The notes: generated by a model not told the origin, from the letters alone. 64,000 bases of DNA from Schizochytrium sp. TIO01 (GCA_004764695.1 SMSO01000025.1:5620862-5684861); one strand, 5' to 3'. Counted from the first letter of the stretch, positions 14,371 through 41,401 are shown. Translations and numbers: made by a program.

Positions 14371-14415
14371 CGGTGATCAGCACCGGCTCCGGGACTTCAA
14401 CCTCTGAAGCTCCTA
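14371..14415 (+). ncRNA. Two-hairpin structured leader upstream of tRNA-Asp copy 1 (representative; homologous element precedes all 18 copies)
   Basis: CGGTG-ATCAG-CACCG, 5-nt linker, GGGACTTCA-ACCTC-TGAAGCTCC, 2 nt, then tRNA. Covariation is seen across copies (see findings). Confidence 0.65.
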
Positions 14416-14487
14416 TTCCAGATAGTATAGTGGCTAGTATCCCCGCCTGTCACGCGGGAGACCCGGGTTCAATTCCCGGTCTGGAAA
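14416..14487 (+). tRNA. tRNA-Asp(GTC) copy 1
   Basis: 72-nt cloverleaf TTCCAGA-TA-GTAT-AGTGGCTA-GTAT-C-CCCGC-CTGTCAC-GCGGG-AGAC-CCGGG-TTCAATT-CCCGG-TCTGGAA-A, with A/B boxes and a downstream oligo-T terminator. Confidence 0.97.
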
Positions 14488-16249
14488 GATTTTCTTTTTC
14501 TCCTCTGGTTATTAGAAAAGAGATTTTTTTATGTTTTTTGTTCTCTTCTTCTTGTAACATCTTTTCCTTTTTTCTTTCAGTATTAGTTTCGTATGATAGC
14601 GGCTCCTTCAAGTTTAAAATATAGTACTAGTAGCAAGATTAAAAAAAAAAGTTATTCTATTATAATTTTTGTTTAAAACACTTTTTAATAAGGTATATTT
14701 TTTTATTGAATGATACTTTGTTTAATCTTCCTGGTAGGTATCATCTACCTAATAGCTACTTTCGGCCACATTTGGATAAGATCACAGTTTCATGGCCTTT
14801 TGTTTGGTTTGGTTTTCGAGGCATCTTCGAGCTCGTCGCTCTTGACATCGCCTGAAGAAACTGGACTTTCGATCAAATCCTGCGAACGAGCGACGCATTA
14901 GATTCCTTCCTTCGAATTTCATTTCATTCACTCAATAACATGTGTCGATGGACCAGTCATCTGCGTTCGGCGCGCTCACGCGTTTGCAGTCCGTATGAAA
15001 GGTCCGAGCAGTTTGCCCCGATAGAAACAGGACAAGATCGTGGTCTGAGTGACCGTCGAACACAAATAATATGAAATTCGAAGGAATGGAATCTGAAGGA
15101 ATGGAATTCGAAGGAATGAAAGCATGAAAATATAAATCGCGCGCGCGTCTATTGGGATGAGTGAAAACAACAATGCTCTAAGTTTGGCACAAGCAGCCCA
15201 AAATCTAAGGGATCTCATATAGATCAGCACTGCGAAGTGCACAGAACTCAGTTGATGGATGGGGAGGTTCTAAGTAGCAAACTTGAAAGTGAATTCTGTA
15301 AAACAACCAAAAGCTCGGATTTAGTGGGCTGGATTTGCCCACACACGCAGTTCGCTTGTGTCGAGTTGGACCGGCACCCACACATACATAGACACATACA
15401 GACATACATCTATATACCACCCAGTTGCAAGATCTTGACCTGCAAAAAGTAGCGTAAAGACAGAAATAGCTAGATACACAACAGCTGTTCTGACCTTCGA
15501 TGAATGACATGCTTCGTTGTAATTTCGAAACCTGTGCATTTTGCAACATCTCGTGGCCTTCCGTAGCACTTAGTTCTACTCCTCGACCATACGAGGTGGG
15601 GAGGGCTATGCTGCATGAAGCAGCGGGGGAGCTTAGATTTGCCGGCGCTGCTCGTGCGGAGCCAAGTTGGTCCACGGTGCTAAACTAAGATGTGAAAACT
15701 CCGAGCAGATGTCTTGGGTGTGCACCTACATTTTTGCGAGAATTCTCATGAAATTACTATTTCTGAGGTAGTAAAATGCCCCTTAAAGATGTTCTCAAGA
15801 TCACGTCTGACTTTAGATGCACATTGGCCGTGCTACTCTCTTGAGCAATCTGCTCACTTTAAGTCCAACTTGAAGCTAGACAGGTAGGTACCTAGCTGCC
15901 CTAGTCCTTAGGAACTCGTGGAAGCGGAGCTCGAATATGCGTGCCTCCGTTCGCGCGATCAGCCTAACACTTCCCGGCTAGGCACTTTCTCTCCACCGAG
16001 ACTGGTTTGTGTAAATAAGAACGATAAATCGAAGCTTAAGCCCTCGTGGGTGTCGCCACCTTGATACAAACAAGAGTGCTTGCTGTTGCACATTCACGTC
16101 ATTCATTAAATTAGTTTGTTTGATTGTTGGCTCAATTACCCCGCTGATGTCCAGACCCAACGAAAGGGTATGTCCACTGCAAAATTTTGGTCATCAATCG
16201 GAAAAAACGGTGATGAACACCGCACTTGGCAGCTTATCTAAGTTACCTG

Positions 16250-16321
16250 TTCCAGATAGTATAGTGGCTAGTATCCCCGCCTGTCACGCGGGAGACCCGG
16301 GTTCAATTCCCGGTCTGGAAA
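16250..16321 (+). tRNA. tRNA-Asp(GTC) copy 2
   Basis: Identical 72-mer, T-run downstream. Confidence 0.97.
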
Positions 16322-17899
16322 GATTTCCTTTTTCCCTTTTTTTCCTTTTTTAAATATAAATAATATAAAAATTAAATTAACTCGAAAAGCCTGAATTTTT
16401 TAAAGCTGGAAGACACCCTTTCTTGTCATAGAATCCAGATGGCCTCCTTTTTACTTATAAATAGAAATCTCAATATAGCTAAGTCCACACAAACAATGTC
16501 TATTTGTACAGGATTATAATGGTCGTGAATACCTTTTAAAACAACTTCTTGCTTTGCACATTTGTGATCAAATGATTATAGCTCATGGACATTAGCATGC
16601 CTTCACAGTATCCAGCTAATAAAAATGGAAACGTTTGTACTCTGCGATATGAATGCCTACACTATCTATATTTCATCTAAAGTTCGAGCAGTAAATAAAT
16701 TGTCCAGGTATGTAAACGTACCCTATAATATGCGTACTGATGCTCTCGCGTGAGATTGGTTTCTGCGTCAGTAAAATTGCAATACAAGCATTACTGGTGA
16801 ATGTATTTGCATAAAGTTCGGTTCGTTATCTTTGATTCGAATGTTTGAAAGATCCAAACATTAAAACCTTTGACAATTACTAGAAAAAACTTTCACAATG
16901 TGAACCTTGCATTTGACTAAACCCCTAACATGGTGTTCTGGTACTTTGTTGAGACTGAGAATATATAAAAGGGACACGCACGGCTTTGACAATCAACACC
17001 TCTGTAGACCCATAAACTCTAAACAATCCAACTAAGGATATGAATTACAGCAACATGTGAAAGAATCGTATGTATATATGTGCCCCTGGACAGTGAGATG
17101 GGATTTGCTAATCTAGGTTTTATACACTGCACCAGAATCTCACCAAAACATTGATCTAAGCCCCTATTGTTAGTCACATAAGCTCAGTTAAAATCATATA
17201 TGTTTATCTTTTATAGGATGCTATTGAGTACACGCCGGTACTCGCGGCGTATATATGTGACAATTTACTATTGCCATGTATTCTTCTCTGTTTCATGTAG
17301 CTCATGCTTTAAATCAAAAAATATTCAAGTCAACGGCGAATGTTATCTTGACTAGATCTCTCATTAAGACAATAGACGATCAGCTTAATCATGAATTAAT
17401 TCTAGTTTGTAGAGGTGAGGAATTGCTTACAAAGAACTGAAATTGTGTCCAGACTAGTTAGAATTGCGCATGCAACACGCATGACTGTAGTGCAAACTCT
17501 TGAGAAACGATCATGCTGAGGTTTTTAATCGAAGGATTATGTAGACAAGACATTAGCAGATTTTGTAGCACACTATTTAAAGTCCTAAACTACTAGGACT
17601 TGTATATGACGTGAATATAACTATCAGATACGAAGGTGTGAGACCAAGGGAACTTGAGAGTGAAAGTTCAATCGTTACGTAAGGACCACCAAGGTTTGTG
17701 ATTGAAAAAAATATCTAAGTTTGTCTCTTGAGTTTTGCTTAATGATAGGTGAATCCCACTTTACTAGTCCCCTAATTAAAATATCAACCAACCCACCTGG
17801 GGGCTCATCTTCGAGGTCGGAAAATCACTAACGCATAAGCCCAAGTATGCAATGCCTTCTCAAATGTTACTGTGCTTTCCAAGCCCCTTGCCTTCATAT

Positions 17900-19000
17900 C
17901 CCTAGTGTACGTCTGACGACTCAAATACAGCTTTCAACAGGGAAGATTTTTTTAGTTATAAGCTAGAATTTTGTTGGTTTGATAATGGTATTTCAAGTTT
18001 TTGCTGATATACGAACTTCAAACGTTTGTAACCTTTGTGAAGCCTCCATGCAACTTTGCTTATGGTGATCGTTAACAATTTTCTCTAGATTCGCTGGGAT
18101 ATGAATAAGCTCTCGTTTATTGACATGGATGTTGATATACGCCAATACAGTAGTATAGACAATCCAGACGTATGGCGAGGTAGCCTGCTTGCAAGGCTTG
18201 TACCAGAGACACTTTTCATATAATATACAACATCTCCAGCTCAAAACTGACCTTTTCAAATGCTCTGCAAGTTTGAAAGAGTAACGCTTCACATGAGGAC
18301 TGTTTATGTAGTTGCAAATCAAGGTGACCAGTTAGCTACACTGCTGAAAGGCATATAGATCTTCATTTTGGTAGAAAGTCTCATGAAAGCTAAGTTTCTG
18401 GGCAGATAAATGTGGAACCACAAAAGAATGCAATAAGTTTGAGCTTACCTTATCGCTGTTCATAAACGTTGTCAAATTGACTAGTATGTAGCCAGATACC
18501 AATATTGGGCACACAGAAATAGCATTAAAAACCTTTCGGATGACCTGGGGCTTGCGAAAGGCTATTCTACTACATCAATTTCGTAGCAACAGGCTTACGA
18601 TACTCTTCATATTTGTCCATATCATTTATTAAGGTAAACTTTGTAAAAACAATTACAGCAAAATCGAGGGTTTACGTAGCGATATTCTCTTATGATAAAG
18701 CTACCCGAAGGAAGATGCACGAGTGTTTTCAACAGTATATTTGAGACGACAGGTTCCGAATATGCGTAAAGCATTTAAAAAGGTTATTATGTATGCTTTG
18801 TATACCTTGCTCAACCGGAGTTGTTTCAAAACCATGGTGATAGAAACAGTGCATTATGAATGGTTTCGAGATGCGACATAAGAAGACAAGAAACAGTGGT
18901 ATTCACCTACCATCCCAAATTGTAATTCAAGCTTAACAAAAATTTTGATCCGACCAAATCATCTAACGTAGCTTTTGAACATGAATTTACATAAGCGCAA
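17900..19000 (-). mobile_element. Heavily decayed Ty1/copia-like RT-RNase H relic (boundaries approximate)
   Basis: Manual minus-strand translation across stops and frameshifts gives, in copia order: GFETTPVEQGI..THIRNL (GF..S..DPCLY..YVDDL-like), YRKPVATKLM (CKPV.TPM-like), NLLHSFVVPH, then KRSVLSW..LWYKPCKQAT (RKSTSG..ISWKSKKQ.T-like). Confidence 0.45.
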
Positions 19001-19241
19001 ACCTGTAGACCCGTAGGACATACTCCCAGCCTAATTCCTAAGCAGCTTACTAACGTATTATTTTGAATTACGAGAAGAGGTAATCTATTTACCTATACAT
19101 AATACCTAGCTAGGTGCTTCCGCTGTTTTTGTCTAAATCAAAAGTGCTTAAGACTATATATACGCATACGCACCCGGTGATACCATCAGATGGAAAAAAC
19201 GGTGATGAACACCGATCCAGGCGATTAATTCAAATTGCCAA

Positions 19242-19313
19242 TTCCAGATAGTATAGTGGCTAGTATCCCCGCCTGTCACGCGGGAGACCCGGGTTCAATT
19301 CCCGGTCTGGAAA
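19242..19313 (+). tRNA. tRNA-Asp(GTC) copy 3
   Basis: Identical 72-mer, T-run downstream. Confidence 0.97.
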
Positions 19314-19599
19314 CATTTTTTTTATTTCCATTTTCTTAAATATTGTTTAATTTTTTAAAATACCCCCAGTACCTCATCACAAAATAGATAATTCGCAGCA
19401 GGAACAAACTTTTAGATCTTCAAAGGCATTCCTGCGATCTATATTTGCTATCTGCTTTTTTTATGCAACTACTTTAAGCTCTCTCTTTTATAATACAGAT
19501 ACCATTGGGTTGCAGTCGTAAATGTTAGTCTAAAACTTGTCTACCCCAACTATTGCTCTTCGTCTTCAACGATTGGTTTCGAGAGAGAATTGGGTAAGA

Positions 19600-22500: not shown

Positions 22501-23206
22501 TCAAAACATATAACTGTTAAATAGCGAGTCTCACTTGTAATCCCAAAACACATAAATTCACGTTTTACTAGATTAATTTTTCCATTGACCTTTCCTGCAT
22601 GTAAATTTGTTCAGCAGGGGGAACGATGGGGCCCGGTTAAAGCTTTGGTTACATGCTCTTAATGCAATGCAAGTCTTTCTTTTGAGCAAGTTCAAAATGT
22701 CTATTCATGAAAACTTTTGTTATAGGATTCTCGTAGGTATATGGTATTTTTGTTACTCAAGTAACTTCCCGCTGCCTGTTGTTAATATTGCTTAGTGAGG
22801 GAAAATGTAATAAAAATGAACTAATATTAATGGCCATAGCATACACGCTTCCTTTCTCTATTTCAACCCATCGTGAGTTCTCTAAGGAGAAACTGAAAAC
22901 CAGAAAAGACTAGTTAGATTTTTTATTTTTTTAAATTCAGGTCTTGTTCCCTTGGTTGTGGTTATCGAGGTTTTACAAGTTTAAAGTAACTATTATCAAA
23001 ATTTATATAACTATAGCTATGGGTACAATATCAACATTATTCGCGAAACACTCCAAGCTATCCTTTCCAACTATATTGACTATGTAAAGAATATGAAACA
23101 ACAATAATCTGAAGGAATTGTTTATATGGTCTGATCTCCTTTCGCATACATCAGTTGGAAAAAACGGTGATTAACATCGATTACGGAAGCTCATTTGAGT
23201 TACCAA

Positions 23207-23278
23207 TTCCAGATAGTATAGTGGCTAGTATCCCCGCCTGTCACGCGGGAGACCCGGGTTCAATTCCCGGTCTGGAAA
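23207..23278 (+). tRNA. tRNA-Asp(GTC) copy 4
   Basis: Identical 72-mer. Confidence 0.97.
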
Positions 23279-23412
23279 GGAATATTTTTTGCTACTTCCA
23301 GTTATAAACTTTTTTATGCGAGTTTCACTAGTGGTATATAAAGAGCAATGGATTTGTAAAGTTTCAGCGGTGATCATAACCGGCGATGGGAGCTCATGAA
23401 GTGAGTTACCAG

Positions 23413-23484
23413 TTCCAGATAGTATAGTGGCTAGTATCCCCGCCTGTCACGCGGGAGACCCGGGTTCAATTCCCGGTCTGGAAA
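23413..23484 (+). tRNA. tRNA-Asp(GTC) copy 5
   Basis: Identical 72-mer. Confidence 0.97.
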
Positions 23485-23611
23485 GAGTATTCTTTTTTAT
23501 TTTCCACATGTCAAAAATAATGTCTTAGGTTAGGTTATGAATGCTATCAACTTTTGGGGTTTCAACCGGTGATCACAGCCGGATCTGGGAGTTCATCAAA
23601 TGAGCTACCAA

Positions 23612-23683
23612 TTCCAGATAGTATAGTGGCTAGTATCCCCGCCTGTCACGCGGGAGACCCGGGTTCAATTCCCGGTCTGGAAA
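23612..23683 (+). tRNA. tRNA-Asp(GTC) copy 6
   Basis: Identical 72-mer. Confidence 0.97.
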
Positions 23684-23696
23684 GGATTATTTTTTT

Positions 23697-23915
23697 TTCT
23701 GTCGATTTGAAAAAGTTTTTTATTTGTTTTTTATTCTGTCGATTTGAAAAAGTTTTTTATTTGTTTTTTATTCTGTCGATTTGAAAAAGTTTTTTATTTG
23801 TTTTTTATTCTGTCGATTTGAAAAAGTTTTTTATTTGTTTTTTTTTTCTGTCGATTTGAAAAAGTTTTTTATTTGTTTTTTTTTCTGTCGATTTGAAAAA
23901 GTTTTTATTTGTTTT
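23697..23915. repeat. 37-bp minisatellite x6 (TTCTGTCGATTTGAAAAAGTTTTTTATTTGTTTTTTA)
   Basis: Units start at 23697, 23734, 23771, 23808, 23846 and 23883. Confidence 0.95.
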
Positions 23916-25455
23916 GTGTGTATCATGAATGCTTTGATATGAATTTTTTGTGTCAGGGTGGTGGCACTTATCGAAGTGGGTGAAAAGTTGCATACCCAGA
24001 ACATTGTTGTTCCGGAAAGCTATAGCAAATGACGAAGAGGTTTTTATCGGAAGGGCGGAGTGCAATATTTCTGCAAGAGCAGAAAAAGCATAAGCTCTTA
24101 GTTGCCACGAGCTGCGGCTTGACGTAGGAGATGGTTCCAATTTTGATGAAACGCTTTAACCAAAAGCATATCCTTTAGCGCTTCTGGAGTTTGGACACTG
24201 TTCGCGATTCAATATTGCTTTTTGATCATTTCACCATGGCACATTAGTTGCATTCACTTCCTGGCAGACTGATGTCCCGTGCAATATACAAGGGCATCAT
24301 TTACGTCGGTATAAGAACTCAGACCCGATCCTGCGTAGCTTTCTCGAGCCACTAGAGAGGAGAACTCGAAGTCATTCAAAAGAATGCAACAAAAAACATT
24401 CAAAGCATGTTATCGTAACAGCCTCTGTTCTTTGCTAAGACCTCTTCCAGACTTTCTCTCCTCTCTTCGGGCGTGAGATCTTTCAAAATAACAAACTCAT
24501 CATACACATCATCAGGAATGATGAAATGTGCTATGACGTGTGCACCAGCAGCGCGTTGTTCATCTAGCTGTCGCTGCGTGAGTAGCTTGTAACCCCCAAT
24601 TGTCTCACCCTCGTTTTGGTTTTGTTCTTTTTAATTGTGGGTCTGTTTCACAAAATGCCAAGCGAGTAAAATAACTACTTCAATTTGGGTCTTGATTACA
24701 CAACTCTCAAAGCAAAGTTTGGGCAAGAAAGAAGAACTCCAGGAAAAAGATCGAGCAAGTACTTCAACATTTAGAAATTCAGGATTTCGCAACAGCCAGG
24801 CAAGAGATGGAAACGTACTTTGGTTGCACCTGGGCGTACGCGCTATCCTTGACATGCTAGTTATAAAGCTCTCGAGCGGATCAAGAATAATGTACAAGAC
24901 GAGGCAGAGTTTGAAAACTTTGAACCAAAGGCAACACAAGATCTTCCTCCAAAGCATCTGATCGAAACTATCGATAATACTTGGGACTCATTTGAATGCT
25001 ATCATTCATTGAACCTTCTTTTCTTTATTGCATTGGTCAATACTCAATATCGAACGACTTATTCATTCTGCCTCGTGACTAACGAGACACTTTATAAGGT
25101 AGAATGCATTATTCGTCGTACTGTAAATGAAACGAGTACGTTTATGAAAGGCTGCAATGATACTTCTTCTTGCGATTTTACGGAAGCCCCAGCGTTTTCC
25201 AAGCTTGTGGATGCATTTTAGGTTGCACAAGATCGTCAGAAGTTTTCGATTTTGGTACATTTTATTTTAAAAACGGCTATCCTTGAACTGTTTCTGTTAC
25301 TTTTGGCTATGGATGTCAAAAAGATAAAAGGGTCTGCATTTGTCACGCAGGTTTCACCACATTTGCGAGCATGTCAAGACTTGACGAGAGTTTTAGTGCT
25401 ATCGGTCGAGGGCTAATGAGGCCCTTTATAGATCAGAAAGCGCACTACAGATGTA

Positions 25456-26210
25456 ATGAAGAGGTTGGTTTATCAAATCCTGTTAGAAAATCTGTTTAAT
25501 TTAATAGAAGCTCGTGCGATCTTCACGCTTGTGTGTCTGTTCAGGGCTACAAAAGATGCTCAGAAGGTTTCGACGTTGGTGCAATTTATTCAAAAAGCGG
25601 CAATCCCTCTGTTAATTTTGTTTTCTTTTGGTTGTGGACGTTGGGTAGATGAGGTGTGCTGCACTCTTCATGCAGATTTCACAGAATTTGCGAATCTCCC
25701 GGGTCTTGACGAGGATTTTAAGGATATTGATCAAGATGGTGTCTATACAGAAGGTGCGATAGAAGAGGGTGATGACGGAGAGATGACAGAGAGTTACATT
25801 TAGAACGTTCTTGCTGATATAGACAATGCAATCAATAAGTCAATTGTTGATGATACTCCTTCTGACACTTTAAAATAGTTTACTTCGGCAAGGGCCGATT
25901 GGGTCAACAGAAGATTATGATGGTAAATCTGACCATTTTGAGTATAGTTTTGACATAAGATCTATTGATAGTAACGGAAAAGATGAATTTCTTCATTTCT
26001 CTGATGATGCAAATGCAAGCTATACAGAAATTGACGCCGTGAGCAAAACCCACAAATGTTCAAACTATACCTCAAATGGTGATACCACTCTTAGTGGTAT
26101 TAGGCTAGTTAAAACATCAAATCTGAAGGACGTTGAGAGCCCTAGGCATGTATCCAAACCAGAGACTCCACAAAACAAAGATACGTTGTCAAGATACGTT
26201 GTCTATTGAA
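25456..26210 (+). pseudogene. Decayed coding-like sequence of unknown family (acidic)
   Basis: A 115-aa ORF continues past its TAG stop (NVLADIDNAINKSIVDD) and in a shifted frame (EDYDGKSDHFEYSFDIRSIDSNGKDEF...). Confidence 0.3.
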
Positions 26211-28121
26211 GGCTCTATCTTACTGTCATTTCAGTCAGAGTTGATTTTCTTTCGCTAAATTATCATAGTCCAATCCATAGTGGTCATGCATACATGATTG
26301 AGTAAAATTTTACACAGTGTATAATCGTGTAATTACGTGCTCAGGTTGGGCAATAAGACTCACGAAGGGTAGAAAATATGGTGCAGACCATGCTTCAATG
26401 TACGAAAACGACATTAGAGAACTTTTCAATGAAGGCCGGGTAATTTCGCCAGATGAGAAGGCACCCTCTATACTGCTTGTTAGACTCAAAATCTAAGTGC
26501 AATATGCGTAACTCATACCCTAACGTGACGGACATCCAGATTAAGATCTTTCCTCTGATGAAAGCATCTATGCAGTCTAGTTCCTGTGTCTGATTGGTAT
26601 CTGAAAGTGGTACAGACCAAGGTTCATTAAAGCGAGGTGACAAATATAATGTTTCATCAAATGTACAGACAAGATGACTGATATGTATCAACACAGCAAG
26701 AACATGAAGGCGAAGGGTTTGATTATCAAGCTTCGCAAAGACTTGCCAGGGGGATTTCCCGGAATTAATGTGGGGCGTCGGTATTACATGCCGAGGTGCA
26801 CAAACGTGCTTTTCGTGCGTGCAAAACGTTAAACATTACATTTATTTCCTAAATGTAATAGGCATATTCATTGAGTATGTATATGTTTTCTTCACTGCTG
26901 CCTTGTTGCAGCTGCTTTGAGCTAACCTCACGCATTAAATTTCACTAAACAGCAAAGCCTGCCGTAACGGGTCACTGGGGCTCATAGTTTACTGAGCCCT
27001 CGGGACAAATAGGATTGTGCCTTCTGTGCTGTTTCTCCGTTTTTGCAGCGCTCTGGGTGACGTTGCAGCATTTTTTTTGAGGTGCGCGAAACCTTAACTT
27101 GACGTTCGCACCGACTGCGAAGTTTCTGACCTTGACAGTAAGTACTGATTGTCGTGCACCATGCACTCTATCAGTTACACCGAACAAAAAGAAACGAAAC
27201 TAAGCCATGATAGGATTTAGTTCGTCACTATGTTACCACGTATTCTGGATAAAGTATGCATGGTTCTTAGGCGGAGTCGGTATTATATAAATTATCCTAC
27301 TACATATATTTTGTTTTAAAAGTAAAGGTTATGTTGAGGGTGTTAGTTTTTCTATATTTACCACATGCTGCTGTTGTTTGGTGCTTCAATGAATGATTAC
27401 TTTGGCTTGATTTCTTATTCCAAGCTAGGTGATTTCAACTTATTGCCTCTGACTACGAAGAGTGATTATGCTATATTCCTCGTGCACATACCCATGATAC
27501 CTAGAATTACCAAACAAAATGAAACCATAGTGGTTGCTTTGGCTAGAGCATTAAACAAGCTAAAAGGTGTTAGGGACTAGCAAGAGCGAGATGAATACCC
27601 CCAAAACAATCCCTCAAGGTGAAAACATTCGCAGATGATGTAAGGGATTAAAGATGTTTGGTCAGGAAATGTCAGTATTGTTGGCTGTGATAGTAAATTC
27701 AAACCAGTCTGATATTTTGTTTTCTATGAATATATTTTAACGAGAAACTACATCCAATATGGGTCAGGGAATCAATCCTTCTCTCCAGTTACTTTCCTCA
27801 AAAAGTGATGCTCATTGCTAAGAAATCTCCACATATCTGAAAAAAACTAATTCGCTTCATTCCATAGTTCACCTAGCGTCATGAACCCATTTTGTACAAT
27901 GTATTTTGTTCAGTCTACAGTATTCCCCGAAAAAATAACCTGATGAAATCGAAATCTTATTAGTATAAATTCGACAGCAAATGAACGAGAAGACTTGATG
28001 GTTAGAACGAATTTAGTTTCGTAGACTCCAACGAACTGGGTGGTCGCAAGCAGCTTTCTGAGACAAGAATTGGAAAAAACGGTGATGAACACCGGCCTTG
28101 GCAACTCATCTGAGTTACCGA

Positions 28122-28193
28122 TTCCAGATAGTATAGTGGCTAGTATCCCCGCCTGTCACGCGGGAGACCCGGGTTCAATTCCCGGTCTGGAAA
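28122..28193 (+). tRNA. tRNA-Asp(GTC) copy 7
   Basis: Identical 72-mer. Confidence 0.97.
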
Positions 28194-28320
28194 ATTAGTT
28201 TTTTAAATTTTTTTATGTGTAAAAATTACTGTTGTCTTGTAGTTTATAAATTCCCTTCGTCTGTGAATGCTCAACCGGTGATCACAGCCGGGCCTGGGAA
28301 TTCATCGAGTGAATTACCTG

Positions 28321-28392
28321 TTCCAGATAGTATAGTGGCTAGTATCCCCGCCTGTCACGCGGGAGACCCGGGTTCAATTCCCGGTCTGGAAA
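28321..28392 (+). tRNA. tRNA-Asp(GTC) copy 8
   Basis: Identical 72-mer. Confidence 0.97.
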
Positions 28393-29283
28393 GAACATGT
28401 TTTTTTGTTATTAAAATTAAATTGTTATGTCAACTCAATCTGTCAAATTTGAATCTGTGGTTTGAGAGAGAGCTTTTCTACCTATGTTTTTCTACATAAA
28501 ATCTCCAGCTCTGATGGCAGGCCTACTGTTTTGTTGTTTTTCCAATTAGTATTCGTTATACTTTTATATTCTATCATGATTTACCGAATAAATAATTAAC
28601 AAGAAAAATGTAATTTATATTCTTTTATTTTAAAACAAAAGTAAATGGCTATGATTGATTGGTTTATTGTCTTGCGCCCCCCTCCCCCCCCCCTTAGTTC
28701 AGAACTCGTACATGCACGCCATGTCAAATGCGAAATAGGAGGCCGACTCATTCGCATTGATGTTTATGGGGTACTTCAGCAGAACTATTCATACCATTCT
28801 CTGCTCCTACATCTCAGAGGAAATCTCATGATGCACAGCTAAATCCCATTGGGTTATAGGGGTCACTGAAAGGTGTGTAAAAAGACTAAGGTAGAGCGGG
28901 TAGGTGGCATTAAATAGTTTACAGTGGTGCCTTAAAGGCGCAGATGAAATACTCCTTCCTCTAAAAGGCATAGTTACTTGTTTCTATAATCTCAATTCGA
29001 GAAGGGAACCTATGCAGGCTGGATACAAGTTAACTGGATTTATGACTTACATGAAGATCACAAAGATAGATTCTAAGAATTGTTAGTAGCCTGAATATCT
29101 ATTGAAGTCATATCGAGTGGGCACATTTGGCACACATTACTTGTGAATTATGTTCGAGAAGTTGCACAAAATAAGGAAATAAGTACATGATCAATTGCTT
29201 AATATGTCCGGAGGTAACTCGGAATCAACCAAACGGAAAATTCGGTAATCAATACCGGTCCTGGAAGCTTGTTGAGTTTCCTG

Positions 29284-29355
29284 TTCCAGATAGTATAGTG
29301 GCTAGTATCCCCGCCTGTCACGCGGGAGACCCGGGTTCAATTCCCGGTCTGGAAA
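29284..29355 (+). tRNA. tRNA-Asp(GTC) copy 9
   Basis: Identical 72-mer. Confidence 0.97.
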
Positions 29356-30883
29356 GAACATCTCTTTTTGCAGTCTTAATTTTGCCATGAGAAGCCACCT
29401 TTTCTTCCTACTTTGTGTCTTTTTAGTTTTTCTTTCTTTTTGTTATTATTTTATTGGTTAATATTTTAAACCTTAATATGCACTGTTTATGACCATGGGA
29501 GTTCTGAAATAACCACATCATATCAACCGTGTTGCTTCTGGCTTTGCTTTCAAACGATCTCCTCATATCAATCCTATATCTCAATGCACAAACCTATTCT
29601 TCCAGGTACTAACCAATCTGATCAAGTGCAATTCGTACAGAAGAAGAGGTTGCAGACTAATGCCCTCTGGCCAATGTCACTGCCATTTGTATTACCATAC
29701 GGGTCATTTGGCAGTGTGGAGACGCGTTGTAGAGGCTTAAAATGGGAGTATTGTCGCGCGTAGCGACCAACGTATGGAATCTGCATCAGAAACTTGTAAC
29801 TATGAGACTCCATCACTTCGGTTTCTCAGGCTTACGTTTTGGCAAAATGAGGTAATTTGTTATTTTACCTTCATTCATTTTTATCATTTTAAACCTGCGG
29901 CGAATTCTATCCGCTTCAAAACGACTCCGTACTGAACCAGCGCATGGAGCTCTTGCGATGTTACATGCGGATTAGCAGCAGCTTCAAGGGCTCCACTGCT
30001 GCCGGAGCCATGGCCTCCATCTGGTTCGACGTTAAAAACAACGACAGCATTGACAGCTTAGTAATTTTGACAGGGGAGGCGTACCTATAAGCAAAGTTGC
30101 TGTTGTTTCTGCTAATTCATTTGATCAGTGCCGTGTTTGCTCACGTGTTTTTTGGGGGCCTGCTACGGCAACATACCACATTGTGCTACTGTAGATACTG
30201 TAAGATGTCCACCAAATTTTTGCATGCCAGGATATGTGCAAACAGCTCATTCTCAACTCGCGATGCATCTCTCTATACGACGCGGGAGGAGATCAAGGTT
30301 GGTGTGCTAAACTATCTTCCTTCTTTAAGTGATTTGTGGACATTCTGTCATTGACCTACTGTATCTTCCTGAATATAAATATGAAGCCTTGCACCCGATT
30401 CATCATATCCACGTCCAAGATTCGGCCACTAAGACTAACTGTGATGGATTGCAAAAAATTTCAGACATTGAAGAGGATGTCCGAAGCCATCACAGGGCGT
30501 GCTTATCACAGGTATACCTTTTTTGGTACTCGTTTTTCTTCCTGCACATATGAATGGGAACAATTTTGCAGAGCTGTTGGGAGCAAACATGTATCTGAGC
30601 CGTGCATTCTGATGTACATTTGATTCGATATATCGAGACCTATTCAGTTTTAAATATAATTTTGACTTTTTTTGGTTTCTTGTCTTTGAAATGATAGCTC
30701 AGCTTTGCTTTGTTTTGATTTGTGTACCCCACCATGGAGGTAATTTAGTTTAATCAAATTATTTTATAAAGTGAACATTAACTCCTGAATTACAATGATA
30801 TAAGTATATATGTATCACAATCCACATTTCGTGTCAGCGGTGGTCATAGCCGAATGAGGAAATTCAAGTTAATGAATTGCCTG

Positions 30884-30955
30884 TTCCAGATAGTATAGTG
30901 GCTAGTATCCCCGCCTGTCACGCGGGAGACCCGGGTTCAATTCCCGGTCTGGAAA
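30884..30955 (+). tRNA. tRNA-Asp(GTC) copy 10
   Basis: Identical 72-mer. Confidence 0.97.
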
Positions 30956-31088
30956 GAATATTTTTTCATTATCAGCCTTACTTTTAGCTAAGAAAGTAAT
31001 CCTTTAGTAGATTATATAGGCTATTGACAATCTTGAGTTTCAGCGGTGATCGTAACCGACAATGGAAACTCACTTGGTGATTTGCCTG

Positions 31089-31160
31089 TTCCAGATAGTA
31101 TAGTGGCTAGTATCCCCGCCTGTCACGCGGGAGACCCGGGTTCAATTCCCGGTCTGGAAA
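31089..31160 (+). tRNA. tRNA-Asp(GTC) copy 11
   Basis: Identical 72-mer. Confidence 0.97.
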
Positions 31161-31286
31161 ATTAGTTTTTTTAATTTTTTATGTGTAAAAATTACTGTTG
31201 TCTTGTAGTTTATGAATTCCCTTCGTTTGTGAATGTTCAACCGGTGATCACAGCCGGATCTGGGAATTCATTGAATGGATTACCTG

Positions 31287-31358
31287 TTCCAGATAGTATA
31301 GTGGCTAGTATCCCCGCCTGTCACGCGGGAGACCCGGGTTCAATTCCCGGTCTGGAAA
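31287..31358 (+). tRNA. tRNA-Asp(GTC) copy 12
   Basis: Identical 72-mer. Confidence 0.97.
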
Positions 31359-31482
31359 GACCTTCTTTTTATTTTTCACACGTAAAAATGGTGTTGTAGG
31401 ATAGAATATAAACGCCATTAATTTTCCAGCTCTCAACCGGTGATCGCAGCCGGATCTGGGAGCTCAACAAATGAGCTACCAA

Positions 31483-31554
31483 TTCCAGATAGTATAGTGG
31501 CTAGTATCCCCGCCTGTCACGCGGGAGACCCGGGTTCAATTCCCGGTCTGGAAA
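31483..31554 (+). tRNA. tRNA-Asp(GTC) copy 13
   Basis: Identical 72-mer. Confidence 0.97.
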
Positions 31555-31681
31555 GAGTATTCTTTTTTATTTTCCACGTGTCAAAAATAATGTCTTAGGT
31601 TAGCTTATAAATGCTATCAACTTTTGGGGTGTCAACCGGTGATCACAGCCGGATCTGGGAGTTCATCAAATGAGCTACCAA

Positions 31682-31753
31682 TTCCAGATAGTATAGTGGC
31701 TAGTATCCCCGCCTGTCACGCGGGAGACCCGGGTTCAATTCCCGGTCTGGAAA
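31682..31753 (+). tRNA. tRNA-Asp(GTC) copy 14
   Basis: Identical 72-mer. Confidence 0.97.
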
Positions 31754-32658
31754 GTATATTACTTTTTATAATGAAAGTTAAACCTCCCTCTTTAAAGAGA
31801 GAAAAAGGCTCGACAATTCAGTTCGAATTGAAAGATGGAAAGAAGCTGTTAATGAACTTTCTCTGCTTACATCGTTTTTATTTTTCGACCAAACTATTTG
31901 TTTGTTGTTTTTCTGCTCGGGTCTAGGATTCGCTTCGATAGGTGCTAATGAGAATTTTGGCCTGTGCGAATATTTCTTTTCGTGTCGAAGGGAGAAAAGC
32001 AAACTTGATGCAAAATAGAATTTGCATCACTCGGCGGCAACTGGTAGCTAAAGTATCGAAGTTGTAAAAGTCAAAGGTCATAGTAGATGAAATAAAGTTT
32101 GGTGTTTACTTTTTGTTTGTACTTTTGAAGTTAGTACTGAGCAAGAATGACATCGAAAGCTAGGAGCACATGATAGTAAAATAAACCATCAAGGTATGTA
32201 GATAGATGGTGCCGATTTAGGCGCAAAACGATGTTGCTACTCTTGATTTTTTTCTGAGGGTATAAACATGAGTCAAAGAATAGCACTCGAAACATTTGCA
32301 TGCTATTGGTAATATCAAAAGATCAAATCATCGTACATACATACATAGGTAGTTTTTGGTTTACGAAAAAAACACAACTGCAGGGTGATGCTCAAAATTG
32401 AGCATACTGAGCATGTTACTAGCTAAACTATGGGCATGGTCGTAGTTGAATATGATAAAAACCTGTTGAGGTTCTTACGCTCAATAATTACAATGTTGTT
32501 CTGTAAGACCTTGCAAGGAAAAATAACGAAATGCGTCTGCTACAAGGTAGCGTATAGGTAAGCTTAATCGCGGCAAGGATCGCGATTAGTAGTTGTGAGA
32601 GAATCCATGCTAACGTAATGCCTGGTGATGGTGATTAATGTGGACAGAAAGACATCTA

Positions 32659-33714
32659 TTAAAAGCCAGGGGGGGGAGCTTGCTGGTGGCGCTTCTGGGG
32701 CTGACTCTGGTGAAACGCATCGAACTCCTCAAAAAAGTCGTGTTGTTCATAGCCTCGCTTTGCCAGGCCGCTCCGCGCATGCAGCGTAGCTGCATTCAAT
32801 ATTTCCTCTCTTTCTCTAATTTGTTGATCGAGCTTGGCCTGGATATAGTCCACATTGATTGCGCCTTGCTCATAGAGCTGAAGATCTTTCGAGCCAATAT
32901 CCATCTTCGTTTCAAAATCTAGGCCAGAGGTGAGTCTTTTTCTGAAATCAAACAAGGTAATAGTCAGTGGATCCCCAAGGGCTACGAGAGCTTGGCGAAC
33001 CCGCCTTAAGACTGCCTCAAACTGCACGACAGACTGTTGTGGCGCCTGTTTGGCCAACAGCCACCTGCGAAGACACGCATCCTTCTCCTCCCACGTGTAC
33101 AGCGTTTGGCAAATCTTTGCAAGAAAGAACCTCACACGCTGCAGACCCAGCGCGTGCTGATATTCCGCAGTTAGGGGTTGCTTAGCAATGTAATTGTACG
33201 CTGCAAGGGCCTTTCCTCTAAGGTGGTTTACAAAGTATTCAAAGACCATATCTTCCCAAGACATTCCCTGATATGCTGCCTGCGTGGAGTTTTCGTAAGG
33301 AGAGAAAAATCCCTCTGGAGAATAGGGGTTTTGATTCAGGTTTGAGCGGAAGGCCTCGCAGCGCTCTACGATATCTGCCGCTGTTGTCCAATTTTCCTGC
33401 GTCCGCTCGGAGCTGAATTGCGGTGCTGGCCCATACGAGGTAATCTTGGATAGACCGCAGCCGCCATCACCCTCGAGAAAACCGCGGTCGCTTGCCCGAG
33501 CAAACTCTTTGTAGTCTTGAGGAGGCTCAGGGCTATACTTGATGAGGCGAGAGAAGACCTCCTCAGCTGGCAGATTGAATCCGTTCCACAGCAGGCCCTG
33601 AAAGTAAGGCTTCATCATAGGGCTTGGGCTCGTCATCGCGGTAGCCGTCGTACTTGTTGTTCCTACGCTGCTAGCGCTTGTGAAGCTCGTGGCGCCACTC
33701 ATGGCGCCGCTCAT
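32659..33714 (-). CDS. Ty3/gypsy-type Gag capsid-like protein, stand-alone (no pol, no zinc knuckle)
   Basis: 351 aa from ATG 33714. YFVNHLRGKALAAY, LLAKQAPQQSVVQFEAVLRRV (major-homology-region-like Q...ESV..F..R) and RKRLTSGLDFETK (F..GL...I) follow the Retrotrans_gag order. Confidence 0.6.
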   Translation of the reverse strand: MSGAMSGATSFTSASSVGTTSTTATAMTSPSPMMKPYFQGLLWNGFNLPAEEVFSRLIKYSPEPPQDYKEFARASDRGFLEGDGGCGLSKITSYGPAPQFSSERTQENWTTAADIVERCEAFRSNLNQNPYSPEGFFSPYENSTQAAYQGMSWEDMVFEYFVNHLRGKALAAYNYIAKQPLTAEYQHALGLQRVRFFLAKICQTLYTWEEKDACLRRWLLAKQAPQQSVVQFEAVLRRVRQALVALGDPLTITLFDFRKRLTSGLDFETKMDIGSKDLQLYEQGAINVDYIQAKLDQQIREREEILNAATLHARSGLAKRGYEQHDFFEEFDAFHQSQPQKRHQQAPPPGF

Positions 33715-33935
33715 GGCGCACGCCGGAGTCTGGAGGACGAGGGAAGAGAGCAAAAATGGAGTCTTCTGGAGGTACTTATGTGGATTGCTTCTTACGGCGG
33801 ACAAGTGCTTTGGGCGTTCAAGTAAGGCCTGCTGCTACGGCTACACGAGAAGAGACCCTCGGTCCACGATCAACTGCCAAGGTCTGCGTCTTCCGGGCGC
33901 GGGGGGGGGGGGGTGACCTTGATTTGCTCTGAGGT

Positions 33936-33972
33936 GTTTGTTTGTTTGTTTGTTTGTTTGTTTGTTTGTTTG
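33936..33972. repeat. (GTTT)n microsatellite, preceded by a G-run at about 33900-33913
   Basis: Direct reading. Confidence 0.9.
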
Positions 33973-36900: not shown

Positions 36901-37443
36901 GAGAAAGAAAGAAGTATTTTTTTTAAATTAAAAAAAAGAAGGTAGTAAAGAAAGGTTAAAGAATAACTGGAAAAGAAATGCGGAAAACTAATATGATCCC
37001 TTCCCGCTTCTGAGAAGAAGTAAAACCCACTCTCTGCGCTGTACATTTTTGACTCATTGCACTGGCCCCATTTTATATTGAACAGGTCAGGGGCGGCTAT
37101 AAGCCATACTTCGTGTACGTAAGTGTGCAAATAAATCGGTAGACAGTCTGGGATAAACATGCAAATAAACACACAGATCAACAACCAATTCCGGTTTCTT
37201 GAAAAGATGAATTCTATCAAGAATCAACAAATAAATAAATCAATGCGTACCTGTGTTAGGAGTATCCAAGCGCTAGTTACTGACTCGATTGGTTAGTTTG
37301 CTTTGTGGCTTTTGGATTCATCGCTCTTTGGGCACTTCGGGAAGTTAGCTGGTGGCTTGGTTGGTCTAACTAATGTGGAAGACGGAGGAGGTCCTTCTCT
37401 TCTGCTCTTCTTCAGGTTCCTTGATTCCAGTATTTGTTTGTTT

Positions 37444-37560
37444 ATTCATTCATTCATTCATTCATTCATTCATTCATTCATTCATTCATTCATTCGTTCA
37501 TTCATCCATTCATTCATTCATTCATTTATTCGTTCATTCATCCATTCATTCATTCATTTA
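37444..37560. repeat. Imperfect (ATTC)n microsatellite
   Basis: Direct reading. Confidence 0.93.
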
Positions 37561-40413
37561 TTTATCTCACGAGGCCCTGTTTACTTTTCATATGCTGGAT
37601 TTATTGTTGAATTTCCAAGCCTCAGGGCGCCTCAAAAGTTGGTCAATCTGGGCATTCTGTATTCTGTGATACAGGGATGCTGGTTTTGGGAATGCCATGC
37701 ATAGAATGAGACCTATTTTAACACGTTTATTTATGTTCCTTCTGGCTTGTGGAGAGGTTCTCGAGCACTTGTGTGTGTGCGTATGTGTGTCAATGGTTTG
37801 ACAGCGCATGGCGCAATGAAGCAAATTGTCGCGTGAGGAGGACCAGCTCGCCAAGATTGCCCAGCTGACGAGGAGTACGTAGCTAGTACTTGCCATGGAC
37901 GGGACTAGGCCTGGTTTAATTCTTCTGCTGGTCGAACTTATACGCACATGGTTAATTTAATTATTATTGATCTCGCAAGCACTCGAAGAATCGAAGAATT
38001 AAAGAAGCGACTCCTGAGCAAACCAAGTAGCCTGGCGGCGGTTCTCTAGAAATGTACGAAGAGTGCCAATGTCGGCCGCGTTCCAGACACTTGCAGGGCA
38101 AGCAAAGTCTGGGATTCCAAAGGAGGTATGTGTTTGTAGTGAAGAAGCGTGTAACAACGTGGGGTTTTGATCACTGATTTGGCTTGGCTTGCCGGCATTT
38201 GGCGAGAATGATGGTAACTGAAAGGTGTGGCAGGAGCCTTGTGACTAGCACTCTTGTGGTGAACAGACACCGTGGCGTTGGGCAACATGTGAAGGAGCAA
38301 CGAGGGGCTGGCGACGGCATCAAGACAAGACGAGAGTGCTGATGCATGCATCCATATCACCGATTTCGAAAAACTCTTATCTGAATATGTGACTAACTTA
38401 GTCAACCTCTACCACGAGGGTTAATTGTTAATAGTGATAAACCACTTTTTTTAAATTTTTTTAAAATTAAGATATCCTTTTTAAAATAATTTAGTCTATA
38501 TGAACTAAAAGGACCATCATGAAACGATGGCGAGCAGAAATGCCCAGCAATACTGCGTTCCCGGGCAGCAACAGGACTCAGCTCAGAATCGCCGACGTGC
38601 CTTCTTCCGATGTCTATATTTGCCGCGACCAGATTAGCCCCTATATCATGGACGATCATAATCTACTCCGAGCTTTTGTGCGCAAGAGAACGTCTCTCAT
38701 GAAGTTGTGTACCAATTTACCCCAGGCCAGCGATTACTACTGACTAGGTATGACACCAAGACAAAGGAACAATTTATAGTCATGTTTGAAATTGTGCAGG
38801 CCACCTACGATCTGAGCCCAGCCACGATGAAGCTTGTGGTTGACCTCATTCTAAACCGTGTGCCCCCGATCAATTAGACTTAAAAAAAATAAGAAGTTTA
38901 TAACAACGAACCCAAAGGTATCTGATAATAGTCTCTTACCTGATGTTGAAAACCCTAACAATTTGATCCATCTACGTGCACACAGCGTCAAAATATTATA
39001 TGGTGTCGGAGGGATGGTTTTGTAAACGTTGATTCATTCGAGCTCACTCTTCTATGGCAAATGGATCAATGTTTCATGGAGTTATTAACCAAAATAAAAG
39101 GAAGATAATATACACAGCCCCGTGTGTTGATTTGTCACTAAAAATGTGTAAATAAATTCATTCCGTGGCGAGTTCAGGGTGTAGATTAGAAGAAAAAGTT
39201 GCCATCAAATACTAACGATGTGTTTCAAATACACGACCTTGTGGCTCGTCGAGCTTCAAAGACGACCATCTCCGTTCTTGGAACGTTCCTTTAGTTTGCC
39301 GCAAGGTATTTCATACTTTTGAGGATAGATGACCTTGAGCACACAAATGTACATTACGGATGTCAGTGCCACGAAACCAACGTCGACCCCTGAGACGAGA
39401 AAGAGGAAACTATCGTCGCCCATTGCTGCTGTGTTATCTATCGTCCCCGATGGCTGTGATGGGTTCTGAACGTAATATATGGGAAAGCAAATATGACGAC
39501 GACGATGAAGAAGAAGAAGAAGAAGAAGAAGAGCGAGACCCGCAATATGATTTGACTTATACAATGGTAGTGACACGCAAATGGATTTGGGAAATGAGGC
39601 TTCGATATAGACAAACACGCTACCAAAATTCACAATGCTACGTCACCGCATGCATGCTTGCATGCAAAGAGTAGAGTCAAACTCGGAAGAGGCGCTCGAT
39701 GTGCACGAAACCCCGCGTCTCCCACTGCGCTGTGAAAGAACACAAAACCCGCAAAGTCCAGACTCCAATATTCTGTTGGTGTATTTAGAACTATCGTGCA
39801 TAGGGGGTCGGAGGCCAGCACTTTTGCCAAATGGGAGGCTGATCACAGTACAGATCATCACGTGCAGGACATCAAGCATGCGGAATCGACGCCACAAAGC
39901 GGGTGCGTGAAATTATTTTCATAATAGCCTCTGGCATCCACTTGGAGATAGACAAATCAGTCTCACGGACAAGGCCGTCTGTCACAAGGCTTTCCAGCGA
40001 TCGTGTCCTCTGGCTGAAATGACACTCCCAAACCTAGAGATTATTAGGTGTGCAGGCAAGCGATACCTTAAATACGCGGGTAAAATGTTGTCAACGGACA
40101 TTGTGGCAAAACGTCTGATGGCTTGGAACACAACACAATTGGGGTGCTCTTCAACAATACAGAAATGGCCATGAGTGAATTAAACCGCAGCAAACGTTCA
40201 GCAACGGCGGCCTCTGTTGTAGCAGGCACTCCACGAAAACCACTGACACAGAAAGTAATGTCTCACGGTTCTTCTTTAAAAAACAAATAAAAGAAAATTG
40301 TAAAAAGTAGAAAATGTAGCGTTCTCCTGCAAAAAGCGATGGGTGGCCGAGGCCGACAGCGTAGTCGACACTCGAAGGGTTGTCGACCAGAACCAAACTA
40401 AAAAAGAATGCTC

Positions 40414-40485
40414 TTTCCAGACCGGGAATTGAACCCGGGTCTCCCGCGTGACAGGCGGGGATACTAGCCACTATACTATCTGGAA
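40414..40485 (-). tRNA. tRNA-Asp(GTC) copy 15
   Basis: Reverse complement of the same 72-mer. Confidence 0.97.
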
Positions 40486-40618
40486 CTGGCAACTCGAGCA
40501 GATGAGTTTCCATGCCCGGCTGCGATCACCGGTTGAATGCCAAAAAGCAAACTCGACATTTATTGCTAAGTAACACGGTCATTCTCAAACTATTCCACAA
40601 AAAGGAAAAAAGAAGGTC

Positions 40619-40690
40619 TTTCCAGACCGGGAATTGAACCCGGGTCTCCCGCGTGACAGGCGGGGATACTAGCCACTATACTATCTGGAA
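40619..40690 (-). tRNA. tRNA-Asp(GTC) copy 16
   Basis: Reverse complement of the same 72-mer. Confidence 0.97.
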
Positions 40691-40817
40691 CAGGTAATTC
40701 ATCGAATGAACTCCCAGGCCCGGCTGTGATCACCGGTTGTAAATTCAGAAGCAGAGGAGACATATATTCGATGGTATTGCATCTATTTTCACATGTGAAA
40801 AAAGAAAAAAGAAAGTC

Positions 40818-40889
40818 TTTCCAGACCGGGAATTGAACCCGGGTCTCCCGCGTGACAGGCGGGGATACTAGCCACTATACTATCTGGAA
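40818..40889 (-). tRNA. tRNA-Asp(GTC) copy 17
   Basis: Reverse complement of the same 72-mer. Confidence 0.97.
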
Positions 40890-41019
40890 CTGGCAACTCA
40901 ACGAATGAATTTCCATTGTCGGTTACGATCACCGTTGAGATACAAATGTGACCTGGATGATTATAAACTAAAATTATTGATTCCCATGAAAGTATTTAAT
41001 AAAAAGAAAAAAGAAAGTC

Positions 41020-41091
41020 TTTCCAGACCGGGAATTGAACCCGGGTCTCCCGCGTGACAGGCGGGGATACTAGCCACTATACTATCTGGAA
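41020..41091 (-). tRNA. tRNA-Asp(GTC) copy 18
   Basis: Reverse complement of the same 72-mer. Confidence 0.97.
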
Positions 41092-41401
41092 CAGGTAACT
41101 CGGAAGAGCTGCCAGAATCGGTGTTGACCACCGCTGATTCCTTGACCTTGATGGCTGAGTTGACACACATAAAGATTGGCAGTAAAGTCCCTAATCACTA
41201 GAGTAGGTATCTCTAGGTATGTAGTTAGGGTCACGATGAATAAAATGAATGAAGGAATGAATGAATAAACGAATGAAGGAACGAATGATTTCGCACCCTT
41301 GTTGAAACATTGAACCCTTTAGATCGCTTGTGTGCTTGAGGGTTCGATCAGAAGCCAAAGAATCACAACCAACTCTTTTTGAATTCACGAGAGTGGTCAC
41401 G

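Follow-up and report, generated by a model that had tools for sequence, protein, structure and literature searches.

Why should a nuclear tRNA gene be preceded, copy after copy, by the same pair of hairpins? The question is raised by a 64,000-nucleotide (nt) stretch of DNA, here called the window, from the thraustochytrid Schizochytrium sp. TIO01, a marine protist. A preliminary description of the window, made from the sequence alone, had noticed a conserved block of two hairpins, H1 and H2, directly upstream of every tRNA-Asp gene. On the evidence of pairing, promoter geometry, and conservation set out below, we consider it likely that pre-tRNA-Asp is transcribed with the block as its 5′ leader, unusually long and folded into two hairpins.

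The window holds 18 tRNA-Asp(GTC) genes, on which ARAGORN and Rfam agree and which are 100% identical to one another. Copies 1, 2, 3, and 9 stand singly, and the others form 199-bp tandem units (copies 4 to 6, 7 and 8, 10 to 14, and, on the minus strand, 15 to 18; Table 1). A search of the 64-Mb genome (37 contigs) added a 19th tRNA-Asp, an identical gene 1.15 Mb away on the same contig that also bears the block, and found no nuclear tRNA-Asp genes beyond these 19 identical copies. All 19 copies have the same order from 5′ to 3′: H1 (15 nt), a linker of 5 nt, H2, 2 nt, and tRNA-Asp. The block measures 41 to 46 nt from the start of H1, and, as had been described, the lengths of H1, linker, and gap are fixed and length changes fall only in the apex of H2. 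A strict layout pattern (CGGTRRT-N6-CG-N5-GG-N13..24-CC-NN-TTCCAGA, the last 7 letters being the first bases of the tRNA) matched the window 18 times, exactly at the 18 starts given by the preliminary description, and matched 0 of 100 dinucleotide-preserving shuffles, which bears out the layout claimed for all 18 genes. When a covariance model built from the block (R1) was searched across the genome, the 19 tRNA-Asp sites scored 36 to 66 bits and the next best match scored 23.6 bits. We conclude that the block is specific to tRNA-Asp and is carried by every copy found in the genome. A metagenome scan with the leader pattern returned 120 stretches, and all 119 matches in the loci examined were due to chance, none being followed by the 3′ acceptor strand.

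Two subtypes of the block can be told apart: a short type (n = 12; copies 5, 6, 8, 10 to 17, and the 19th copy) and a long type (n = 7; copies 1, 2, 3, 4, 7, 9, and 18). The tandem arrays formed by copies 4 to 6 (23165-23683), 7 and 8 (28080-28392), and 18 to 15 (40414-41133) each have a long-type copy first, followed by short-type copies. The array of copies 10 to 14 is wholly short type, and the remaining long-type copies are the singles. This arrangement suggests that the arrays grew by the addition of short-type 199-bp units behind a founder gene.

RNAalifold analysis of the leaders returned, as the consensus, the same two hairpins that had been drawn in the preliminary description. On this consensus, 93.6% of cells were standard pairs (97.5% in H2), compared with 89.7% in shuffles, and the covariation score was reached by 0 of 500 shuffles. 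Four pairs were changed on both sides, and pairing fell to 21 to 51% when the partners were slid by 1 to 3 columns. One H2 pair occurred as CG, UA, or UG and the next one as AU, GU, GC, or CG, while H1 showed a G-C to A-U change in copy 9 and a G-U pair in copy 4; all the pair types listed earlier for H1 and H2 were present. A ranking by mutual information with average product correction (MI-APC), which is blind to structure, placed three H2 pairs among the 15 highest of 1035 column pairs, against a chance expectation of about 0.2. Pairing is thus kept while sequence changes, through compensatory and wobble substitutions, as had been claimed. Another claim, that the third H2 position swaps between G.A and A.G, held in the 12 short-type copies but failed in the long type, where C.A, A.A, C-G, A-U, or G.U was found instead.

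The predicted fold was also stable. The minimum-energy fold consisted of H1 and H2 in 19 of 19 copies, with a mean of -14.2 kcal/mol and a mean z of -2.3, and a control stretch further upstream gave a z of 0.1. When the whole precursor was folded, the leader was self-contained in 18 of 19 copies.

Transcriptional start sites were predicted by calibration on genes of the same genome with known 5′ ends, namely those for 5S rRNA and U6. The sequence TATAWA was present on 13 of 13 distinct 5S genes examined, at -30 in 12 genes and at -29 in 1, and the single U6 gene had TATATA at -29. Most 5S genes also share GCACC or CACC about 12 to 17 nt before the start. TATA-dependent promoters for RNA polymerase III (Pol III) seem, from these sequences, to be general in the genome, and the spacing on 5S and U6 implies that tRNA-Asp transcription should begin at or just before H1. 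All 12 short-type copies had a TATA-type box, matching at 6 or more of 7 positions, 31 to 35 nt before H1; a CAAC or CAGC motif marks their predicted start, 1 to 5 nt before H1, which gives a leader of 46 to 49 nt. In the 7 long-type copies, H1 was preceded by an additional A-rich stretch. Six of these, copy 7 being the exception, had a CATC or CAAC motif about 15 to 19 nt upstream of H1, five had a TATA-like box 38 to 45 nt before it, and the predicted leader is 50 to 57 nt long. Transcription starting near the tRNA would require a TATA-like sequence within the leader, but none was found there, and a T4 run occurred inside the leader in 0 of 19 copies. Runs of T4 to T9 that could serve as terminators lay within about 12 nt 3′ of the tRNA in 18 of 18 window copies. 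Upstream of copy 3, at about 19172-19184 of the window and between the TATA box and the predicted start, the 5′ half of H1 is repeated in part (CCGGTGATACC).

A leader of this kind would have to be removed by ribonuclease P (RNase P). The genome encodes a single homologue of PRORP, the protein-only enzyme (80.9 bits against a cut-off of 39.1), in a 799-aa open frame (locus G000:C31:5110535-5114200, gene at 5112035-5112700). A genome search for nuclear RNase P RNA (RF00009) returned nothing, but it was shallow, scored 15 candidates, and did not recover its controls, and so it counts for little. Stramenopiles are reported to use PRORP in all compartments, the RNA enzyme having been replaced (review, PMC10941002). 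The enzyme that would remove the Asp leader is probably protein-only PRORP. PRORP reportedly contacts only leader positions N-1 and N-2, and pairing of N-1 with N73 leads to miscleavage by PRORP (PMC8925977). The gap between H2 and the tRNA is exactly 2 nt in 19 of 19 copies and single stranded in the predicted folds, a width that would match contact at -1 and -2 only. Moreover, N-1 is always a purine (G in 12 copies and A in 7) and the discriminator is A, so that N-1 and N73 cannot pair. The acceptor stem itself opens with U1-A72 and U2-A71, with A73 as the discriminator in 19 of 19 copies. In yeast tRNA-Asp, G73 is an identity element.

These observations are best explained if Pol III is positioned on the tRNA-Asp genes by the TATA-type box, with the start about 30 bp downstream of it, like on the 5S and U6 genes. 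Transcription would begin where predicted above for the short type and about 8 to 15 nt further upstream in the long type. The nascent leader would fold alone into H1 and H2, next to the tRNA cloverleaf, and PRORP would cut in the fixed 2-nt open window. Selection would then hold both helices, their spacing, and the single-stranded gap. Our best guess is that the fold keeps a long leader from disturbing the folding of the tRNA while exposing a cleavage site that is fixed and accessible; the leader may also gate processing or be released as an RNA. What the sequences show is the anatomy of the block, how it is conserved, its covariation and strand asymmetry, the promoter geometry by analogy, and a gene for PRORP; from these we infer the transcription start, the cleavage by PRORP, and any function.

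Structured leaders, which had gone unnoticed in the preliminary description, were also predicted on other tRNA families of the genome. In a survey of 51 nonredundant upstream regions, which covered 8 anticodon families, the last 32 nt ahead of the tRNA had a mean folding energy of -5.6 kcal/mol and a z of -1.17, versus -2.0 kcal/mol and -0.14 for a control 80 nt further up. The difference had a p of about 1e-7, or 4e-5 with Asp left out. Twelve Lys-CTT genes lie in 208-bp tandem units; their TATA box is at -76 to -78, and a nested hairpin is conserved in their leader. Dispersed Val-GAC genes have a TATA box at about -57 to -61 and a conserved CCAGCAG, followed by a hairpin whose sequence differs between copies, with six or seven versions. 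In most Thr-AGT copies examined, a 7-bp hairpin lies upstream, and Asn-GTT has upstream hairpins in several copies. The loci of these families were G000:C35:885600-888300, C30:9380800-9384200, and dispersed Val and Thr loci. The leaders of the other families are unrelated in sequence to the Asp block, and the Asp leader is the most structured among the sampled families. A uniform genome-wide leader was rejected, as leaders were family specific and some were short, and a clearly negative z over 48 nt was found only for Asp, Lys-CTT, and Thr. On these predicted folds, the genome has a set of structured leaders, each specific to its tRNA family, to which the Asp block belongs.

Some tandem arrays in the genome are arranged differently. 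In the Val-GAC/CAC arrays (units of about 165 bp), a TATA-like box, TTGTAGG or TTATAAAC, lies at about -41, a conserved CAGCAGC lies between the box and the start, and TCAACAA lies at the predicted start. The leader there would be about 11 nt, unlike that of Asp.

A bolder reading, which we put forward tentatively and regard as unlikely, is that in thraustochytrids the 5′ leader of pre-tRNAs has become a functional RNA module that differs by isotype. Every family would then have its own structured leader, serving as a natural gate on PRORP, a built-in equivalent of the synthetic RNase P riboswitches, or as a stable released RNA. A protein-only RNase P, with its need for no more than two free leader nucleotides, would permit such modules.

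The case for a transcribed leader is built on 19 paralogues, whose flanks are saturated, and on the geometry of the promoter, and three points weigh against it. First, an upstream scan found no recognizable TATA-like box for long-type copies 2 and 7. Second, the spacing of the block is fixed to the tRNA and not to the TATA box, as would also be expected of a DNA element positioned by reference to the internal promoter. Third, many nonstructural column pairs were also high in mutual information, inflated by the split into two subfamilies; because that split lifts such pairs too, we grade the covariation as real but moderate.

Among the alternatives, a co-transcribed small RNA fares best, although we think it quite unlikely. 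Here the two-hairpin RNA of 46 to 57 nt would persist after cleavage and act in trans. In its 5′ half (CGGTGAT), H1 hardly varies in sequence, beyond what pairing alone explains, and together with the purine-purine G.A or A.G of H2 this hints at recognition by a partner; the stability of the fold, about -14 kcal/mol, also speaks for such an RNA. Set against this, no Rfam family was matched. A scan of the window with Rfam 15 gave tRNA matches only, and leader-only stretches gave nothing or 12 to 16 bits against thresholds of 70 to 84, in line with the preliminary description, in which the block was not recognized as a known family. Nor was complementarity to the tRNA above that of shuffled leaders (z of 0.07), and the leaders of other families are unrelated in sequence, so that they offer no common partner motif.

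Three more specific ideas about pairing or mimicry were tried and rejected. Pairing between leader and tRNA found no support above chance in the duplex energies (the mean z of 0.07 just given), and the leader was self-contained in 18 of 19 precursor folds. The conserved GAU of the H1 loop, taken as an Asp codon meeting the anticodon, was not above chance, and the loops of other families lack a cognate codon. The linker, taken as a mimic of the acceptor strand, was likewise not above chance, and it is not conserved.

A second alternative, which we judge very unlikely, is that the block is a promoter element at the DNA level, a binding site or spacer between the TATA box and the internal A box, with transcription starting close to the tRNA. 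The distance from block to tRNA is indeed fixed in both subtypes while that to the TATA box differs, and the near invariance of CGGTGAT concerns sequence and not only pairing. The two strands of the block are not equivalent, however. G-U occurred on the sense strand in 19 cells, whereas A-C, which would favor the other strand, occurred in 1, in keeping with the earlier claim that wobbles work only on the tRNA strand. The sense strand was also more stable than the antisense strand in 17 of 19 copies (p = 0.0013). Wobble and strand asymmetry together point to RNA, or at least to a single sense strand, rather than to a DNA palindrome. The compensatory changes preserve pairing, and the TATA boxes at -30 on the 5S and U6 genes, with no TATA-like box suited to a start near the tRNA, likewise speak against a DNA element. 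Finally, the other families carry different sequences at the same place, which is unexpected of a site for a shared factor.

A third alternative is functionless shared ancestry, in which duplicated units were homogenized by gene conversion spreading from the identical tRNA genes. Tandem units of 199 bp account for many copies, and genes that are 100% identical imply either homogenization or strong selection. The mean pairwise identity among copies, taken region by region, has another shape. It is 0.30 to 0.34 in flanks more than 3 nt upstream of H1, 0.81 in H1, 0.39 in the linker, 0.74 in each H2 arm, and 0.46 in the 2 nt adjoining the tRNA (-2/-1); in the trailer, it is 0.43 over the first 5 nt and 0.37 beyond the T-run. 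The flanks are thus effectively randomized, and identity does not decay away from the identical tRNA. Because conservation shows no gradient with distance, with the -2/-1 positions and the linker near random and well below the more distant H1, a gene conversion tract fails to explain the block. In addition, the 3′ side has no such block, and the changes that do occur keep pairing. We therefore regard functionless ancestry as highly improbable. The same figures agree with the description of the linker as free sequence between conserved stems, and the proposal of selection on a sense-strand RNA fold is supported by covariation, strand asymmetry, and stem-limited conservation alike.

The least credible alternative is the decayed remnant of a partner gene upstream, which could have been a second tRNA (compare the yeast tRNA-Arg/tRNA-Asp unit) or a small nucleolar RNA (snoRNA; compare the dicistronic genes of plants): H1 (a stem of 4 to 5 bp with a loop of 5 to 7 nt), the 5 nt, and H2 loosely recall an anticodon arm, variable loop, and T arm, and a match at 16 of 27 positions, made by eye, runs from H1 into the linker against the T arm and 3′ acceptor strand of tRNA-Asp, but ARAGORN and Rfam find no tRNA or snoRNA at the block, the loop lacks U33 and the T-loop consensus, a TGATGA-like box occurs in only 3 copies, and the TCTGG similarity sits in the free-sequence linker of only some copies. 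Identification of the block as a C/D snoRNA, tRNA half, or T-arm remnant found no model support and was rejected.

The leaders and tRNA genes of the window are collected in Table 1. A 37-bp tandem repeat (6.1 copies, 97% matches) occupies window positions 23690-23915, starting at the T-run that would terminate tRNA-Asp copy 6. A 381-aa open frame without a Pfam match (32659-33804, minus strand) lies between the two tRNA-Asp clusters, which face each other. A 676-aa open frame (2569-4599, minus strand), whose sole match in Pfam, close to the C terminus, is to a Brinker-type DNA-binding domain, may be transposase derived. One protein of the window has its closest named relative in the thraustochytrid Hondaea fermentalgiana, at 64% identity.

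Table 1. Leaders and tRNA-Asp(GTC) genes of the window, with the putative TATA-type box of each leader and the T-run 3′ of each gene
Feature	Position	Strand	Evidence	TATA-type box or T-run
Leader 1 (H1-linker-H2), long type	14371..14415	+	pattern, H1+H2 fold	TATA-like 14330-14336, 6/7
Leader 2, long type	16208..16249	+	pattern, fold	no clear TATA-like box
Leader 3, long type	19200..19241	+	pattern, fold	TATATAT 19155-19161, 45 nt before H1
Leader 4, long type, G-U in H1	23165..23206	+	pattern, fold	TATA-like 23121-23127
Leader 5, short type	23368..23412	+	pattern, fold	TATATAA 23335-23341, 33 nt before H1
Leader 6, short type	23567..23611	+	pattern, fold	TATA-like 23536-23542, 31 nt before H1
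Leader 7, long type	28080..28121	+	pattern, fold	no clear TATA-like box
Leader 8, short type	28276..28320	+	pattern, fold	TATAAAT 28245-28251, 31 nt before H1
Leader 9, long type, compensatory A-U in H1	29243..29283	+	pattern, fold	weak TATA-like 29201-29207
Leader 10, short type	30838..30883	+	pattern, fold	TATATAT 30805-30811
Leader 11, short type	31044..31088	+	pattern, fold	TATATAG 31013-31019
Leader 12, short type	31242..31286	+	pattern, fold	TATGAAT 31211-31217
Leader 13, short type	31438..31482	+	pattern, fold	TATAAAC 31407-31413
Leader 14, short type	31637..31681	+	pattern, fold	TATAAAT 31606-31612
Leader 15, short type	40486..40531	-	pattern, fold	TATA-like 40558-40564
Leader 16, short type	40691..40735	-	pattern, fold	TATA-like 40760-40766
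Leader 17, short type	40890..40934	-	pattern, fold	TATA-like 40961-40967
Leader 18, long type	41092..41133	-	pattern, fold	weak TATA-like 41165-41171
tRNA-Asp 1	14416..14487	+	ARAGORN, Rfam	T-run 14490-14493
tRNA-Asp 2	16250..16321	+	ARAGORN, Rfam	T-run 16329-16333
tRNA-Asp 3	19242..19313	+	ARAGORN, Rfam	T-run 19316-19323
tRNA-Asp 4	23207..23278	+	ARAGORN, Rfam	T-run 23285-23290
tRNA-Asp 5	23413..23484	+	ARAGORN, Rfam	T-run 23493-23498
tRNA-Asp 6	23612..23683	+	ARAGORN, Rfam	T-run 23690-23698
tRNA-Asp 7	28122..28193	+	ARAGORN, Rfam	T-run 28199-28204
tRNA-Asp 8	28321..28392	+	ARAGORN, Rfam	T-run 28400-28406
tRNA-Asp 9	29284..29355	+	ARAGORN, Rfam	T-run 29365-29369
tRNA-Asp 10	30884..30955	+	ARAGORN, Rfam	T-run 30961-30966
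tRNA-Asp 11	31089..31160	+	ARAGORN, Rfam	T-run 31166-31172
tRNA-Asp 12	31287..31358	+	ARAGORN, Rfam	T-run 31366-31370
tRNA-Asp 13	31483..31554	+	ARAGORN, Rfam	T-run 31563-31568
tRNA-Asp 14	31682..31753	+	ARAGORN, Rfam	T-run 31763-31767
tRNA-Asp 15	40414..40485	-	ARAGORN, Rfam	T-run 40400-40405
tRNA-Asp 16	40619..40690	-	ARAGORN, Rfam	T-run 40606-40611
tRNA-Asp 17	40818..40889	-	ARAGORN, Rfam	T-run 40805-40810
tRNA-Asp 18	41020..41091	-	ARAGORN, Rfam	T-run 41007-41012

Nuclear pre-tRNA leaders are usually treated as short, disposable, and unconstrained. If our reading is true, the Asp leader shows that eukaryotic leaders can be under selection, with which the unrelated leaders on other families agree. 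It would also link the way in which an upstream TATA box sets the Pol III start, the co-transcriptional folding of the precursor, and the minimal leader requirement of a protein-only RNase P. Thraustochytrid tRNA promoters are already in use to drive short hairpin RNAs, and sequencing data for small RNAs under 200 nt are available for Schizochytrium sp. (PMC13731073). Aurantiochytrium and Schizochytrium are industrial producers of docosahexaenoic acid, and the predicted start site and structured leader bear directly on the design of tRNA-promoter cassettes.

How does the Asp leader compare with known systems? Ordinary eukaryotic nuclear pre-tRNA leaders are about 5 to 12 nt long, unstructured, and not conserved between gene copies. 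Like those of yeast, plants, and animals, the Asp leader would be a segment between the Pol III start and position +1 that RNase P removes, with a T-run terminator after the tRNA; it differs in its predicted length of 46 to 57 nt, its two hairpins, and its conservation, with compensatory changes, in 19 copies. Dicistronic Pol III genes include yeast tRNA-Arg/tRNA-Asp, plant tRNA-snoRNA, and gammaherpesvirus tRNA-microRNA (miRNA) units. In these a second structured RNA is co-transcribed with the tRNA and split off by tRNA-processing nucleases, as may happen to the Asp block, but the Asp partner lies upstream, has a length of only about 45 nt, and finds no match among tRNA, snoRNA, or miRNA models. 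Long leaders are also found in bacteria and organelles, as in Escherichia coli supF, whose leader is 43 nt (PMC8925977). Those leaders likewise run to tens of nucleotides and are removed by RNase P, as is presumed for Asp, yet they result from operon structure or from the distance to the promoter and do not form a structured module conserved on all gene copies of a nuclear Pol III family.

Synthetic RNase P riboswitches place a hairpin just upstream of a tRNA, and single-stranded leader bases set the accessibility of the cleavage site (PMC7897497, PMC8925977). The Asp block resembles them in that a hairpin immediately precedes the tRNA, and for PRORP N-1 and N-2 suffice. The riboswitches, however, are designed and bind a ligand, whereas the Asp leader has no evident aptamer or alternative fold, and its 2-nt gap is constitutively open in the predicted fold. 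A parallel in promoter architecture is with tRNA genes of Schizosaccharomyces pombe and plants, which have an upstream TATA box and a CAA start motif (cf. PMC11547032). Shared with them are a TATA-type box about 30 bp before the start, seen here on 5S and U6, and CAAC or CAGC at the predicted start. The difference lies in distance, as the Asp box is about 76 to 79 bp before the tRNA (85 to 87 bp in copy 3) versus about 35 to 40 bp, and a TATA box so far upstream of the tRNA would entail a long leader. The tandem Val-GAC type of the same genome keeps the short TATA-tRNA arrangement, like that of S. pombe and plants.

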